Made by a program: the position numbers and the translations under genes | Shown here: positions 4,816-11,284 of the stretch, one piece after another | How the letters are laid out: each line of letters opens with the position of its first letter | Numbering within the stretch: the stretch's first letter is position 1 | Sequence record: MT995927.1 | Direction: 5' to 3' (one strand) | Length of the DNA stretch: 64,000 nucleotides | The notes under the pieces: generated by a model | Told to the model about the DNA's origin: nothing | Seen by the model: only the letters and a program-made list of their open reading frames with translations | Databases searched by the model: none

Positions 4816-4936
4816 TTAAATACCTCTTCTAAAAATTACTATAATTTATAGTTAATGGCATATGCGAAGTCATTAAAAATGACTTCGCATATGCGTACTA
4901 TATTTTATTTAGACAACAATGTCATATCATAACAAC

Positions 4937-5507: not shown

Positions 5508-5792
5508 TGCGTTATTTCCTTTATTACAATGTAGTATATAATCCATGGTAGGTTATATACCGATTATGAAAATGACTCGTTACCATTTTCTTCATCTAAA
5601 TTAATATCGTTAGGGGTTACAAAGAACGAGAACCACCTATTGATGTAATATAGCCAGGGGTGGCAAACCCCTGGCATTCAGACACACTCTATAACTAAGT
5701 CTACCACCGAGTATGTTTAGTGGGTAGCTTTAAGATTATCTAAATACAGTAATCCTACATAATATCATCGCACTGGTATTTTTATCTTTAGT

Positions 5793-8700: not shown

Positions 8701-9180
8701 TCAACGTGGCCATTGTAATGATGTTATCTTTTTACCATTAATGTACACTGTAATTACTTCAGCCCAATTATGAATAACATGTTCAATAATTGGTACATCA
8801 TGTCTACTGGCTACACCATTCATATTCCATTTGACGTAGATGTTCATTAGATTAGTGGTTAACTTATCTTTCATAATACTGGGGGAATCTAATTTAGTAC
8901 CACCTAAACTAAAGAAATAATCATTTATTTCTTTTAGATAACCAGTATTATAAATATTAAGTTCTTCATTAATCAATGATTCTTTAGGTAGTACATAATT
9001 ATCTTTAGATGAATCTAGTTTAGTTTGATTTACAATATTATTTACTAGACCCCTTAGGATAGCACTTGCTCGACCAGCTTCACGTCTTTTATATTTATCA
9101 TAATCTTTTACATTAGCTGCAATCTTATCAAATTCTTTTTGGGCATAGATTAATCCTGGTAAAAGTTCATTCTTAATCAT
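8701..9180 (-). CDS. Hypothetical protein
   Basis: 159-aa ORF with AT-rich phage codon usage. Confidence 0.6.
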   Translation of the reverse strand: MIKNELLPGLIYAQKEFDKIAANVKDYDKYKRREAGRASAILRGLVNNIVNQTKLDSSKDNYVLPKESLINEELNIYNTGYLKEINDYFFSLGGTKLDSPSIMKDKLTTNLMNIYVKWNMNGVASRHDVPIIEHVIHNWAEVITVYINGKKITSLQWPR

Positions 9181-9234
9181 TTTATAATTACTCTATGTTG
9201 TTTGTACATATTTTAATATACATACGTAAAAACA

Positions 9235-9261
9235 AAATATAAAGCCTCCCCGAAGGGAGGC
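9235..9261 (-). terminator. Intrinsic terminator
   Basis: Minus strand reads GCCTCCC-TTCG-GGGAGGC-TTTATATTTT. Confidence 0.85.
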
Positions 9262-9388
9262 GATATATCGTCATTAATGCCCAGCAAAGAGTTTTACTCT
9301 CTGGGAGCCAGTTGGAAGGGGGACTGGCTCCGATTTATTATGACTAATGTAGAAACAAGGGGGAGGGATTATTTCTACATATCATTAC
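9237..9388 (-). ncRNA. Candidate structured small RNA with two C-rich loops
   Basis: Two perfect 9-bp stems, a third hairpin and a closing stem, between a TATG late-promoter-like motif and a terminator; no ORF. Confidence 0.45.
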
Positions 9389-9430
9389 ATACTTGGTAAG
9401 TTATTCTTCAACACCAATGAGCGTATTGTG

Positions 9431-11284
9431 TTAATTGGTGTTCTCTACGGATGAACCACTTGGGAAGCTACTGATAGACGCTTGCATTAGTTTCAACATA
9501 TCGATAGCAAATACTCGATATGTAGATTCAACCTTAGCATCGTCGTATGCTGCATGAATGTTAAGAATGCTATTATCGGCCCGTTTAGCCAGCAGATATA
9601 CGTCCTCAAGAGCATCTTTATCTTTAATAGTGGATAGCTTATGTTTGTAAATATCCCCATTGACAGATAGATCAGGATACTGGGCTAACCAAGTGTCCGC
9701 AATAGTCTTAGTGTTGTTAGACAAAATATCAATGATAACGTTAGCTGCTTCCACAATACCGGTAGCATCAAGTAACTTAATCTTAATACCAGCATTATCA
9801 GGCCATTTGGGTTCTTGGAAGTTTGTCTTTACATTGGGTTTCCATTCAGCAAGAAGAGTAGCGACTTTCTTAGGGTCTTGCCAATCATTCCCTTTGAACA
9901 GATTAACCACGGGGGCTAGCATCTTACTGTTCTCATCCAGAACTTTCTGGTTGTGTTGATCAGCTTTAGCTACAGCATTAGTTACATTAGCTTTTGCGGT
10001 CTTAGGATCATTAGATGCAAACGTCTCGTAACTCGATACTTTTACTTCGCCGGTTTTAAGTTTTGCTTCTGCCACCCATTTGGGGTCACCATAGGTACTT
10101 TTCAGCGTAGCAATAGCTTTCTTCTTTTTATCGAGATTGATCTCAGGGCCAGAGTCGAAGATACTCTTAATGATGTCGATAAGACCTTCATTTGAGACTT
10201 GTATAAAACCGGGAGTGTTAATGATGGACTTCTCTACATACCCGCCACGAATAACCCGATTTATAAAACCATTAAGACCACTACCAGTTTCGGCCATATC
10301 TTTCATGATTTCTATATTCGTTTCACCAGCACTTTGGGCATTGTATAAATAATAAGAACCATCTTTAAATTTTAGTATAATCCAGTCATCTCCAGTTAGA
10401 TATGAATCAATATTACTATCATTCATACTTTGGTATTTAATGAATTCTGGATTAGTGCTTAGTACTTCTTCAATAAATTCTTCTAATGCCGCAGAATTAT
10501 TAATAGCATCAACAGGTGGAATTTCACCATCAATGGGTTCAGTAGTTGGACCAGTAACAATGGCAGGTAACGGATCCTCCTCTACAATAACAGTTTCTTC
10601 TACTGGTAGAGCACCACATGAAGCATCAATTAGTTTATTAAAACTACTAATGATTTCACCAAGTGCTACAAGAACTGCTGGCTGTTCAACTTGCTCAACT
10701 TTGGCAATACCAGTTTCTGTAAATTCTTCAGTGATTCGGTTATAGACTTCCACTAATTGATTAGTAAGCTCTGCTACTTTTGGCAGAGTCTGCTTAGACA
10801 GAGGTTCAACTACAGTTGTATCTGCTTCAACAAAAATAGAATCATCTTCTTCTAAACGGCTAGTATTAGCTGAGCCAGCTGTGAAGTTATAAGGCATATC
10901 TTGAATTACTTCATTAATTTCAGATGCCGCCATATCTTCATTTAGACGACCACTATAAGTACGCATCATACCTTCTGCTTCTTTAATAGTGGAATGCGCT
11001 AAGCGTCCCCAATCACCACGCATAATACCGCGCTCGGTAAGACCGCGTGCAGCTGAACCAAGATCAATAGGTTCTTCAATAAATGATTGTTCTTCAACCC
11101 ACTCCTCATTACTGTAACATTCTTTTAGAATGGTTTTAAATTTAGTACTAAAGGGTTGTAGAATCTTTTTATCTACTTGTTCAACATTTGTTTTAAAGTG
11201 TTCTAGACTTGGTGTAGCTTTTGAAGATACTTTTTCAGTACCGCTATATAGCGTACGATTTAGGAAGTTTAGCATTTTATTCAT
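9431..11284 (-). CDS. Internal head (ejection) protein, phiKZ gp303-like, likely processed by the prohead protease
   Basis: Acidic N-terminal region with S/A-x-E sites (SLE, ALE) and SNE|GLIDIIKSIF typical of phiKZ head proteins; position two genes downstream of nrdB. Confidence 0.7.
   Translation of the reverse strand: MNKMLNFLNRTLYSGTEKVSSKATPSLEHFKTNVEQVDKKILQPFSTKFKTILKECYSNEEWVEEQSFIEEPIDLGSAARGLTERGIMRGDWGRLAHSTIKEAEGMMRTYSGRLNEDMAASEINEVIQDMPYNFTAGSANTSRLEEDDSIFVEADTTVVEPLSKQTLPKVAELTNQLVEVYNRITEEFTETGIAKVEQVEQPAVLVALGEIISSFNKLIDASCGALPVEETVIVEEDPLPAIVTGPTTEPIDGEIPPVDAINNSAALEEFIEEVLSTNPEFIKYQSMNDSNIDSYLTGDDWIILKFKDGSYYLYNAQSAGETNIEIMKDMAETGSGLNGFINRVIRGGYVEKSIINTPGFIQVSNEGLIDIIKSIFDSGPEINLDKKKKAIATLKSTYGDPKWVAEAKLKTGEVKVSSYETFASNDPKTAKANVTNAVAKADQHNQKVLDENSKMLAPVVNLFKGNDWQDPKKVATLLAEWKPNVKTNFQEPKWPDNAGIKIKLLDATGIVEAANVIIDILSNNTKTIADTWLAQYPDLSVNGDIYKHKLSTIKDKDALEDVYLLAKRADNSILNIHAAYDDAKVESTYRVFAIDMLKLMQASISSFPSGSSVENTN

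Follow-up and report, generated by a model that had tools for sequence, protein, structure and literature searches.

A conserved, structured small RNA gene beside the PHIKZ303 homologue of Pseudomonas phage U1B

Introduction

Does the 250-nucleotide (nt) gap between two genes of Pseudomonas phage U1B encode an RNA in its own right, and what might such an RNA do? The gap lies in the 64,000-nt stretch that starts sequence record MT995927.1 (here, "the window"), from a phage of the genus Phikzvirus. It separates the homologues of the phiKZ genes PHIKZ303 and PHIKZ302 and is located upstream of a tRNA cluster. An original prediction, made from the sequence letters, had placed a stand-alone small RNA (sRNA) with two C-rich loops on the minus strand of this gap. 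We found that the locus matches a small non-coding RNA (ncRNA) of phiKZ, TU237, and that its predicted fold is conserved in three phage genera. The transcript itself is already known from phiKZ. What is new is the covariation-supported fold, the strand, the probable start site and promoter class, the membership of three genera, and the evidence that the unit is portable.

Results

Correspondence with a mapped phiKZ transcript

In phiKZ, ONT-cappable-seq identified a 141-nt transcript at this locus, TU237, with a start site of its own and with terminator T131 at its 3' end (Putzeys et al. 2024, microLife, PMC10914365). The start site was found in the cap-enriched library and the transcript runs in the direction of the genes. 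Northern blotting confirmed its length and abundance, with a longer read-through form also visible (PMC10914365). TU237 was listed among 17 phiKZ "5'UTR-derived ncRNA candidates" (UTR, untranslated region) under the label "5'UTR of PHIKZ302" and was attributed to conditional premature termination. That study gives boundaries and the northern blot for TU237, and no structure, cross-genus family, or function (PMC10914365). We found no functional study of this RNA in the literature up to late 2026. The ncRNAs obtained by Grad-seq come from other loci, the PHIKZ298 3'UTR and the p40 5'UTR (Gerovac et al. 2021). At 10 min after infection, differential RNA sequencing (dRNA-seq) gave a single predicted phiKZ sRNA, which was not confirmed (PMC8244752). 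This lack of a confirmed phiKZ sRNA at 10 min fits with later expression of the RNA described here.

The gene order of U1B and phiKZ at the locus is identical, with the RNA between PHIKZ303 and PHIKZ302 on the gene strand. The intergenic regions share 97.2% identity over 212 nt, and only two substitutions, in loop 1 and in the junction, fall within the RNA. With locus, strand, and terminator all the same as for TU237/T131, we consider the U1B element to be very probably the U1B copy of TU237. The stand-alone, minus-strand sRNA of the original prediction thus has a counterpart in phiKZ with its own start, the same terminator, and northern blot confirmation (PMC10914365). A discrete transcript of about 141 nt has been demonstrated in phiKZ only, and the ends given below for U1B are taken from the phiKZ data.

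Fold of the U1B RNA

The minus strand has a minimum free energy (MFE) of -57.9 kcal/mol, compared to -33.3 +/- 3.9 kcal/mol for 200 shuffled sequences (z -6.28). The architecture consists of a 5' hairpin, followed by a three-way junction made of a closing helix and hairpins 2 and 3, followed by the terminator. The elements are as follows:

9238-9378, minus strand: small RNA, about 141 nt (ends from the phiKZ data)
9347-9380, minus strand: hairpin 1, arms ATGTAGAAA/TTTCTACAT, 12 base pairs (bp) when U-G, A-U, and A-U pairs are added
9359-9368, minus strand: loop 1, UCCCUCCCCC, 10 nt
9337-9344, minus strand: closing helix, 5' arm; in the alignment described below, both sides have changed in 7 of 8 pairs and every cell (100%) is paired
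9270-9278, minus strand: closing helix, 3' arm, which contains one bulged A
9304-9331, minus strand: hairpin 2, a 9-bp stem with arms GGAGCCAGT/ACTGGCTCC
9313-9322, minus strand: loop 2, CCCCCUUCCA, containing the invariant octamer CCCUUCCA
9285-9303, minus strand: hairpin 3, 8 bp, CAGAGAGU-AAA-ACUCUUUG, from RNAfold and relatives
9244-9261, minus strand: intrinsic terminator GCCUCCC-UUCG-GGGAGGC, a 7-bp G+C stem with a UUCG loop, equal to phiKZ T131
9233-9243, minus strand: U-rich tail of the terminator (terminator and tail together, 9233-9261)

The stems, both C-rich loops, and the strong terminator that had been predicted are all present in the sequence as described. Hairpin 3 also exists, but its predicted CCAG...CUGG form is replaced by the 8-bp CAGAGAGU/ACUCUUUG stem, based on RNAfold and the relatives. 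A covariance model (R2) recovered one copy of the RNA in the window, so that a second copy is absent from these 64 kb.

Range of the family

By BLAST, the locus was found in 47 Phikzvirus records at 88-100% identity and, at about 73%, in the 8 Pawinskivirus-type records of the collection (PS119XW, PA1C, phiLBG22, HPP-Temi, and others). With 5 Phikzvirus sequences as its only input, a covariance model found the Pawinskivirus copies with 46-54 bits. The two-genus model (Phikzvirus and Pawinskivirus) in turn found a copy in PhiPA3 (Miltoncavirus) with 57.8 bits (E 7e-11). There, the RNA is flanked by the PHIKZ303 homologue gp375 on its upstream side and by gp374 on its downstream side. No copy was seen downstream of the PHIKZ303 homologues of 201phi2-1, Phabio, and Viktualia. 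When PHIKZ304 was used as a synteny anchor, nothing was recovered from IMG/VR, and GenBank phages gave Phikzvirus and Pawinskivirus only. We also scanned IMG/VR, metagenomes, and 185,579 genomes, one for each prokaryotic species, for motifs of the RNA; phiKZ-type and PhiPA3 contigs were the only matches, apart from chance ones in high-GC coding DNA. As far as can be seen, the family is confined to three genera of nucleus-forming jumbo phages of P. aeruginosa.

At the same place after the PHIKZ303 homologue, 201phi2-1 and Viktualia carry a different short unit with a TATG start and a terminator about 80 nt on (L018 6306-6390; L020 5432-5516). This unit is conserved between these two phages and is a positional analogue of the RNA, with no detectable homology to it.

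Covariation of the stems

Pairs were counted in a model-fitted alignment of 10 distinct sequences from the three genera, which leans towards structure; MAFFT alone had misaligned the 3' closing arm between genera. Standard pairs fill 96.9% of the cells. Changes on both sides are seen in 19 of 37 pairs, compared with 0-5 pairs after shifting the 3' partners by 1-3 columns. For hairpin 1, both sides have changed in 9 of its 12 pairs. All cells of hairpin 2 (100%) are paired and two of its pairs covary, and hairpin 3 has 92.5% of its cells paired, with one covarying pair and one position that is mismatched in Pawinskivirus.

Since the model-fitted alignment is biased to structure, single-sequence folds and swaps within a genus serve as an independent check. 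An A-U to G-C swap in hairpin 1 can be read directly from the sequences within Phikzvirus (AttikonH10), and hairpin 2 has a G-C to A-U swap in HPP-Temi. In three Pawinskivirus phages, the closing helix reads GACCACA/TGTGGTC, GATCACA/TGTGATC, and GAACCGCA/TGCGGTTC. The bulged base of the closing helix varies, A or C, in PA7_Y12. PS119XW and HPP-Temi, each folded singly, give the same hairpin and three-way junction. In the single fold of PhiPA3, hairpins 1, 2, and 3 recur, while in the MFE structure a distal GU-rich arm closes the junction and one more small hairpin forms. As a third check, PhiPA3 has a proximal closing pairing of unrelated sequence, CUCGG/UCGAG.

Taken together, these comparisons indicate that the fold is conserved in three phage genera. 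Covariation in phiKZ relatives had been suggested as a check on the original prediction and was found across all three. The prediction would have fallen with an unprocessed 3'UTR lacking an independent 5' end and conserved stems and loops, and what we found instead is an RNA with its own start in phiKZ and a conserved, covarying fold.

Start site and promoter

The following elements lie at and upstream of the 5' end, where "nvRNAP" is the non-virion RNA polymerase of the phage:

9395-9403, minus strand: middle-promoter-like element TAACTTACC, at -25 to -17 relative to G 9378
9388-9391, minus strand: first TATG, a possible alternative start site and the one named in the original prediction
9378-9381, minus strand: second TATG, probable start motif of the nvRNAP (+1 is G 9378)

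In phiKZ, the nvRNAP initiates at the G of TATG, middle promoters add AAanTTACc centred near -24, and some middle promoters also carry TATG (PMC4666361). The first TATG of U1B (9391-9388) is kept in U1B-type Phikzvirus, Pawinskivirus, and PhiPA3 and reads TATC in phiKZ proper. The second TATG (9381-9378), 10 nt downstream, is invariant in the 9 aligned Phikzvirus and Pawinskivirus sequences and is present in PhiPA3, which makes up the 10 distinct sequences. Because the first TATG is TATC in phiKZ, where the RNA was mapped, and the second is invariant, the second is the better start candidate. Counting 141 nt, the published length, from G 9378 reaches approximately 9238, inside the U-tract. The start is thus probably G 9378.

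An element of the TAACTTACC type, with the same spacing, is also found in Pawinskivirus and PhiPA3. Phage phiKZ proper has AAAACTACC at -29 to -21 in place of TAACTTACC at -25 to -17. From these motifs, the promoter looks to be of the middle type with a TATG start and not purely late. The "late-promoter-like" TATG first proposed is therefore present at 9391-9388, but initiation is probably 10 nt downstream of it and from a promoter that is probably middle-type.

Strand and coding potential

The original prediction had offered an alternative in which the opposite strand displays GGA loops of the RsmA type. A plus-strand RNA that sequesters RsmA/RsmN would show GGGGGAGGGA and UGGAAGGGGG loops, and this strand does fold better than shuffled sequences (z -3.5). 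However, that fold is weaker than the minus-strand one, about 28 cells that are G-U pairs on the minus strand would become C-A mismatches, and only on the minus strand is the terminator hairpin followed by a U-tract. The mapped phiKZ transcript also runs in the direction of the genes (PMC10914365). The G-U pairs, the one-sided U-tract, and the published orientation lead us to exclude the RsmA-type reading, to which we give next to no weight.

The RNA had been described as having no open reading frame (ORF). Small ORFs across it do exist, but they are unconserved. One short ORF, from an ATG upstream of G 9378, is 13 codons long in Phikzvirus; it extends to 26 codons in PS119XW, HPP-Temi, and PhiPA3 and is frameshifted in PA1C. 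Its peptides in PS119XW and HPP-Temi differ at 7 of 26 residues, and the differences are mostly non-synonymous. By reading of the translated peptides, these differences appear to track the co-variation of the stems and not purifying selection on a protein. A 40-amino-acid (aa) ORF on the plus strand was rejected as a gene, as it occurs in U1B only. Two tiny coding sequences annotated in AttikonH10 (32 and 34 aa; L002 2557-2655 and 2642-2746) are probably spurious, and the first of them needs an ATG made by a compensatory stem substitution.

Known RNA classes were searched as well. At gathering thresholds, Rfam reported only five tRNAs in the window and no riboswitch or leader at the locus. Its E-value mode added sub-threshold noise only (ar14 with 19.8 bits; Phe_leader on the terminator). 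A tRNA, transfer-messenger RNA (tmRNA), or tRNA-like element was rejected, since ARAGORN found just the five annotated tRNAs and no Rfam model matched the locus.

Conserved pyrimidine-rich loops

The stems around the loops covary, while the octamer CCCUUCCA of loop 2 does not change in any of the 10 distinct sequences of the three genera. The octamer occurs once in the window. Loop 1 is more variable and reads UCCCUCCCCC in U1B-type phages, UCCUUCCCCC in phiKZ, UCACUCCU in Pawinskivirus, and CCUACUCCU in PhiPA3. In Phikzvirus the two loops are about 45 nt apart, with CCCUCC or CCUUCC in loop 1 and CCCUUCC in loop 2.

The folded domain is 8 nt from the terminator in Phikzvirus and several tens of nt from it in PhiPA3 and Pawinskivirus. 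A single-stranded linker joins junction and terminator in Pawinskivirus (about 45 nt) and in PhiPA3 (somewhat shorter) and is absent in Phikzvirus. Within it, a 20-nt single-stranded block, UUCUCCUUGUUGUGUUGAUG, is fully conserved between Pawinskivirus and PhiPA3. Additional single-stranded motifs of the CUCCUU type number two in Pawinskivirus (CCCCUCCUUUC and UUCUCCUUG) and one in PhiPA3 (UUCUCCUUG). Bacterial 16S rRNA ends at its 3' side with the anti-Shine-Dalgarno (anti-SD) sequence ...CACCUCCUUA-3', and the C/U-rich loops and linker motifs resemble this end in sequence.

Three side observations concern the linker. It is C/U-rich and then G/U-rich in Pawinskivirus and PhiPA3 (L004 3131-3177, L008 1640-1686, L017 about 4829-4855), a segment that has been lost from Phikzvirus. 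The proximal closing arm is repeated in the GUUGUG part of the linker, making possible an alternative, larger junction, which is the MFE structure in PhiPA3. Finally, the 19-mer TCTCCTTGTTGTGTTGATG is found in an unrelated 144-kb IMG/VR contig, where it immediately follows a stop codon and an intrinsic terminator comes next (L025 1440-1500). This placement is as in Pawinskivirus and PhiPA3 and may be due to chance, as about one match is expected in such a collection.

Neighbouring genes and portability

The genes flanking the RNA in U1B are the following:

9431-11284, minus strand: PHIKZ303 homologue, a structural head protein
8701-9180, minus strand: PHIKZ302 homologue
Downstream of the RNA gene, minus strand: five tRNA genes (Leu, Pro, Met, Asp, and Asn)

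Upstream, the PHIKZ303 homologue is the constant neighbour in all three genera. Downstream, the first feature is PHIKZ302 in Phikzvirus, tRNA-Leu directly in Pawinskivirus, and gp374 in PhiPA3. The Pawinskivirus-type phages have no PHIKZ302 homologue, and the RNA element sits directly upstream of tRNA-Leu there. In all three genera, tRNA-Leu is on the same strand, about 40-940 nt downstream of the RNA. The published label of TU237 as a PHIKZ302 leader thus fails in Pawinskivirus and PhiPA3, where the downstream gene differs. A downstream gene that changes with the genus, variable spacing, and the lack of a shared alternative pairing on inspection by eye point to an RNA gene that is self-contained and has its terminator as a separate module. 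These data argue for a portable RNA gene and not for a leader of PHIKZ302.

The PHIKZ303 homologue of U1B stops at a TAA (9431-9433, minus strand), 30 nt earlier than in AttikonH10, PA7, and the Pawinskivirus relatives. All of these have GAA at the U1B TAA codon, and their ORF continues to GAAGAATAA. In relatives with the longer PHIKZ303 homologue, the middle-promoter-like element abuts the stop codon, with the first bases of the element being part of the stop. Elsewhere in the window, the gap at about 5547-5792 (minus strand), between the PHIKZ298 and PHIKZ297 homologues, corresponds to another published phiKZ ncRNA, 3'UTR_PHIKZ298 (Gerovac 2021), which was later re-bounded to phiKZ 270595-270485 (Putzeys 2024, PMC10914365).

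Discussion

A possible trans-acting RNA

The explanation that we favour, tentatively and with somewhat less than even confidence in it as a whole, is a self-contained RNA gene of the TU237 type that acts in trans via anti-SD-like loops. Very probably, as the U1B copy of TU237, the RNA is started by the nvRNAP of the phage at a TATG, probably at G 9378, below the middle-promoter-like element. Most transcripts then stop about 141 nt on at the intrinsic terminator, and a minority continue into the direction of PHIKZ302 and the tRNA cluster. The 5' hairpin and the three-way junction display two pyrimidine-rich loops (CCCUUCCA in loop 2 and CUCC or CUUCC in loop 1). In the trans-acting model, these loops would pair with purine-rich, SD-like stretches of mRNA, so that translation initiation or the fate of the mRNA would be modulated from mid-infection on. 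The RNA has the generic features of a trans-acting sRNA, namely its own promoter and intrinsic terminator, no coding function, and a conserved single-stranded seed. Action in trans by base pairing through the pyrimidine-rich loops is nonetheless a step that we hold more loosely than the model as a whole, with its timing, partners, and outcome inferred.

Several results weigh against such pairing. In the window, there is no site of at least 8 nt complementary to either loop, except for the RNA's own antisense and three 8-mers that are chance matches or terminator arms. Allowing one mismatch, TGGAAGGG is not enriched in the window (22 found versus 31 expected). The SD sequences of the phage are short (AGGA 35/73, GAGG 21/73, and GGAGG 2/73 in the window), so that pairing would span only 4-6 bp and be poorly selective. 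Loop 1 varies, and CCUUCC in phiKZ proper breaks the CCUCC motif. The tail UUUAUAUUUU is untypical of an Hfq-binding U-run. Since the RNA is made inside the phage nucleus, it would need to be exported to meet mRNAs bound by ribosomes. Lastly, several copies of a C/U-rich motif would fit a protein sponge equally well. For the specific proposal that the loops seed on GGAGG-type SD sites, the evidence is weak.

The original prediction had also noted a match between the exposed C-rich sequence and the 3' arms of many terminators. This match is real, as the 64 kb contain 10 CCTCCC-N3-6-GGGAGG hairpins versus 0 expected:

8050, 9245, 11342, 13019, 19253, 39883, 41571, 45706, 51272, and 59133 of the window: CCTCCC/GGGAGG hairpins

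The interference with terminator folding that was drawn from it has little in its favour, as loop 1 of Pawinskivirus and PhiPA3 (ACUCCU) matches the GGGAGG arms over 4 nt only. On these loop sequences, we regard terminator interference as less likely still than pairing with SD sites. As a side observation, the arms are palindromic, so that each hairpin can terminate on either strand, and they form a phage-wide terminator "brand."

Other explanations of the locus

Could the short RNA instead be the by-product of a cis-acting leader or attenuator, in which promoter, fold, and leaky terminator gate read-through into the tRNA-Leu unit? Putzeys et al. class the RNA as 5'UTR-derived with conditional premature termination, and a full-length read-through form was seen (PMC10914365). 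A conserved folded domain does precede the terminator, and tRNA-Leu follows on the same strand within about 1 kb in all three genera. Phage 201phi2-1 has a short 5'UTR RNA immediately before a tRNA, and its tRNA-Leu is transcribed from a middle promoter (PMC11512511). However, the first downstream gene differs by genus, and the stretch between folded domain and terminator is several times longer in some genera than in others. We saw no conserved alternative pairing between domain and terminator when checking by eye, with a plausible antiterminator (GAGGG:CCCUC) in PhiPA3 only, and there was no Rfam riboswitch or leader match. A covarying domain of 110 nt with invariant loops also exceeds what a terminator needs. 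Opening the proximal closing arm, in favour of the alternative distal closing helix of Pawinskivirus and PhiPA3, costs 3.5-5.3 kcal/mol and leaves the terminator untouched. A riboswitch-like switch was rejected, as no conserved antiterminator was seen by eye and the alternative distal helix is 3.5-5.3 kcal/mol worse than the MFE. Overall, we consider the leader unlikely, while leaving it an appreciable chance.

A decoy or scaffold for a protein is a slightly weaker contender that we also judge unlikely. Here, a rigid fold would present repeated C/U motifs that bind or titrate an RNA-binding protein of the host or the phage, following the logic of RsmY/Z or CrcZ with a pyrimidine motif. The two similar loops about 45 nt apart in Phikzvirus and the extra single-stranded motifs in Pawinskivirus and PhiPA3 would suit this role, as would the lack of a specific RNA target in the window and the abundance of the RNA on northern blots (PMC10914365). 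Set against these are a varying loop 1 motif, the lack of a candidate protein, and Grad-seq at 10 min, which did not report the RNA. The RNA might otherwise be a 3'-end module of the PHIKZ303-homologue mRNA, whose tail and terminator stabilise or insulate the head-protein transcript, with no role for the short RNA itself. The PHIKZ303 homologue is indeed the conserved neighbour in all three genera, and in most relatives its stop codon is about 20 nt before hairpin 1, so that upstream read-in must end at the same terminator. But a stabilising tail needs no invariant loop sequences, the promoter-like elements TTACY and TATG are conserved, and the cap-enriched library has a start site specific to the short RNA (PMC10914365). 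We therefore find a pure 3'-end module improbable.

Comparison with known RNAs

For the favoured trans-acting RNA, the closest functional precedent is the cuckoo/alpha-r14/CcsR/NfeR1 sRNAs of alphaproteobacteria, which act in trans and occlude ribosome-binding sites (PMC4615179, PMC10746234). Like the U1B RNA, they have adjacent hairpins with variable, covarying stems and conserved C-rich, anti-SD-like loops (PMC4615179, PMC10746234). They carry CCUCCUCCC in every hairpin loop, whereas the U1B RNA lacks CCUCCUCCC and its loops, UCCCUCCCCC and CCCCCUUCCA, differ from each other. The U1B RNA also differs in its three-way junction and its phage origin. Its best Rfam match is ar14 (RF02344), which at 19.8 bits misses the gathering score of 58.8. 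The resemblance is one of analogy, and not of homology or membership.

Among the Firmicutes, sRNAs with C-rich loops (RsaE/RoxS and the UCCC loops of RNAIII) pair with SD regions through short G-C-rich duplexes, largely without Hfq. There is no sequence or structural homology between these and the U1B RNA, and hosts and biology differ. Phage T4 makes two stable RNAs, "species 1 and 2" (rnaC and rnaD), which are small, structured, located in a tRNA gene cluster, and processed from a tRNA precursor. The U1B RNA, in contrast, has its own start and terminator and lies upstream of the tRNA cluster. Nearer to U1B are the other small RNAs of the phiKZ group, 3'UTR_PHIKZ298 and 5'UTR_p40 (Gerovac 2021) and the gp182/gp277 5'UTR sRNA that is conserved in phiKZ, 201phi2-1, EL, and PhiPA3 (PMC11512511). 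As with the U1B RNA, these are short, abundant, and terminator-ended, have nvRNAP promoters, and in some cases cross genera, but their loci and sequences differ.

Implications

Phages of the phiKZ type transcribe in a protein nucleus and translate outside of it, and abundant, conserved ncRNAs are the first candidates for control at the RNA level. Our results give precise positions of loops and stems for mutants and antisense knock-downs, which makes the function of this RNA directly testable. A bolder possibility, which we offer as speculation and think unlikely, is that the three genera share a family of anti-SD-mimic RNAs that reprogrammes translation globally from mid-infection on. Such RNAs would cover SD-like tracts of mRNA or titrate a factor that binds the 16S 3' tail or C/U-rich RNA. 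If true, phages that keep transcription and translation apart would have in the anti-SD mimic a layer of host shut-off or temporal control that is based on RNA.

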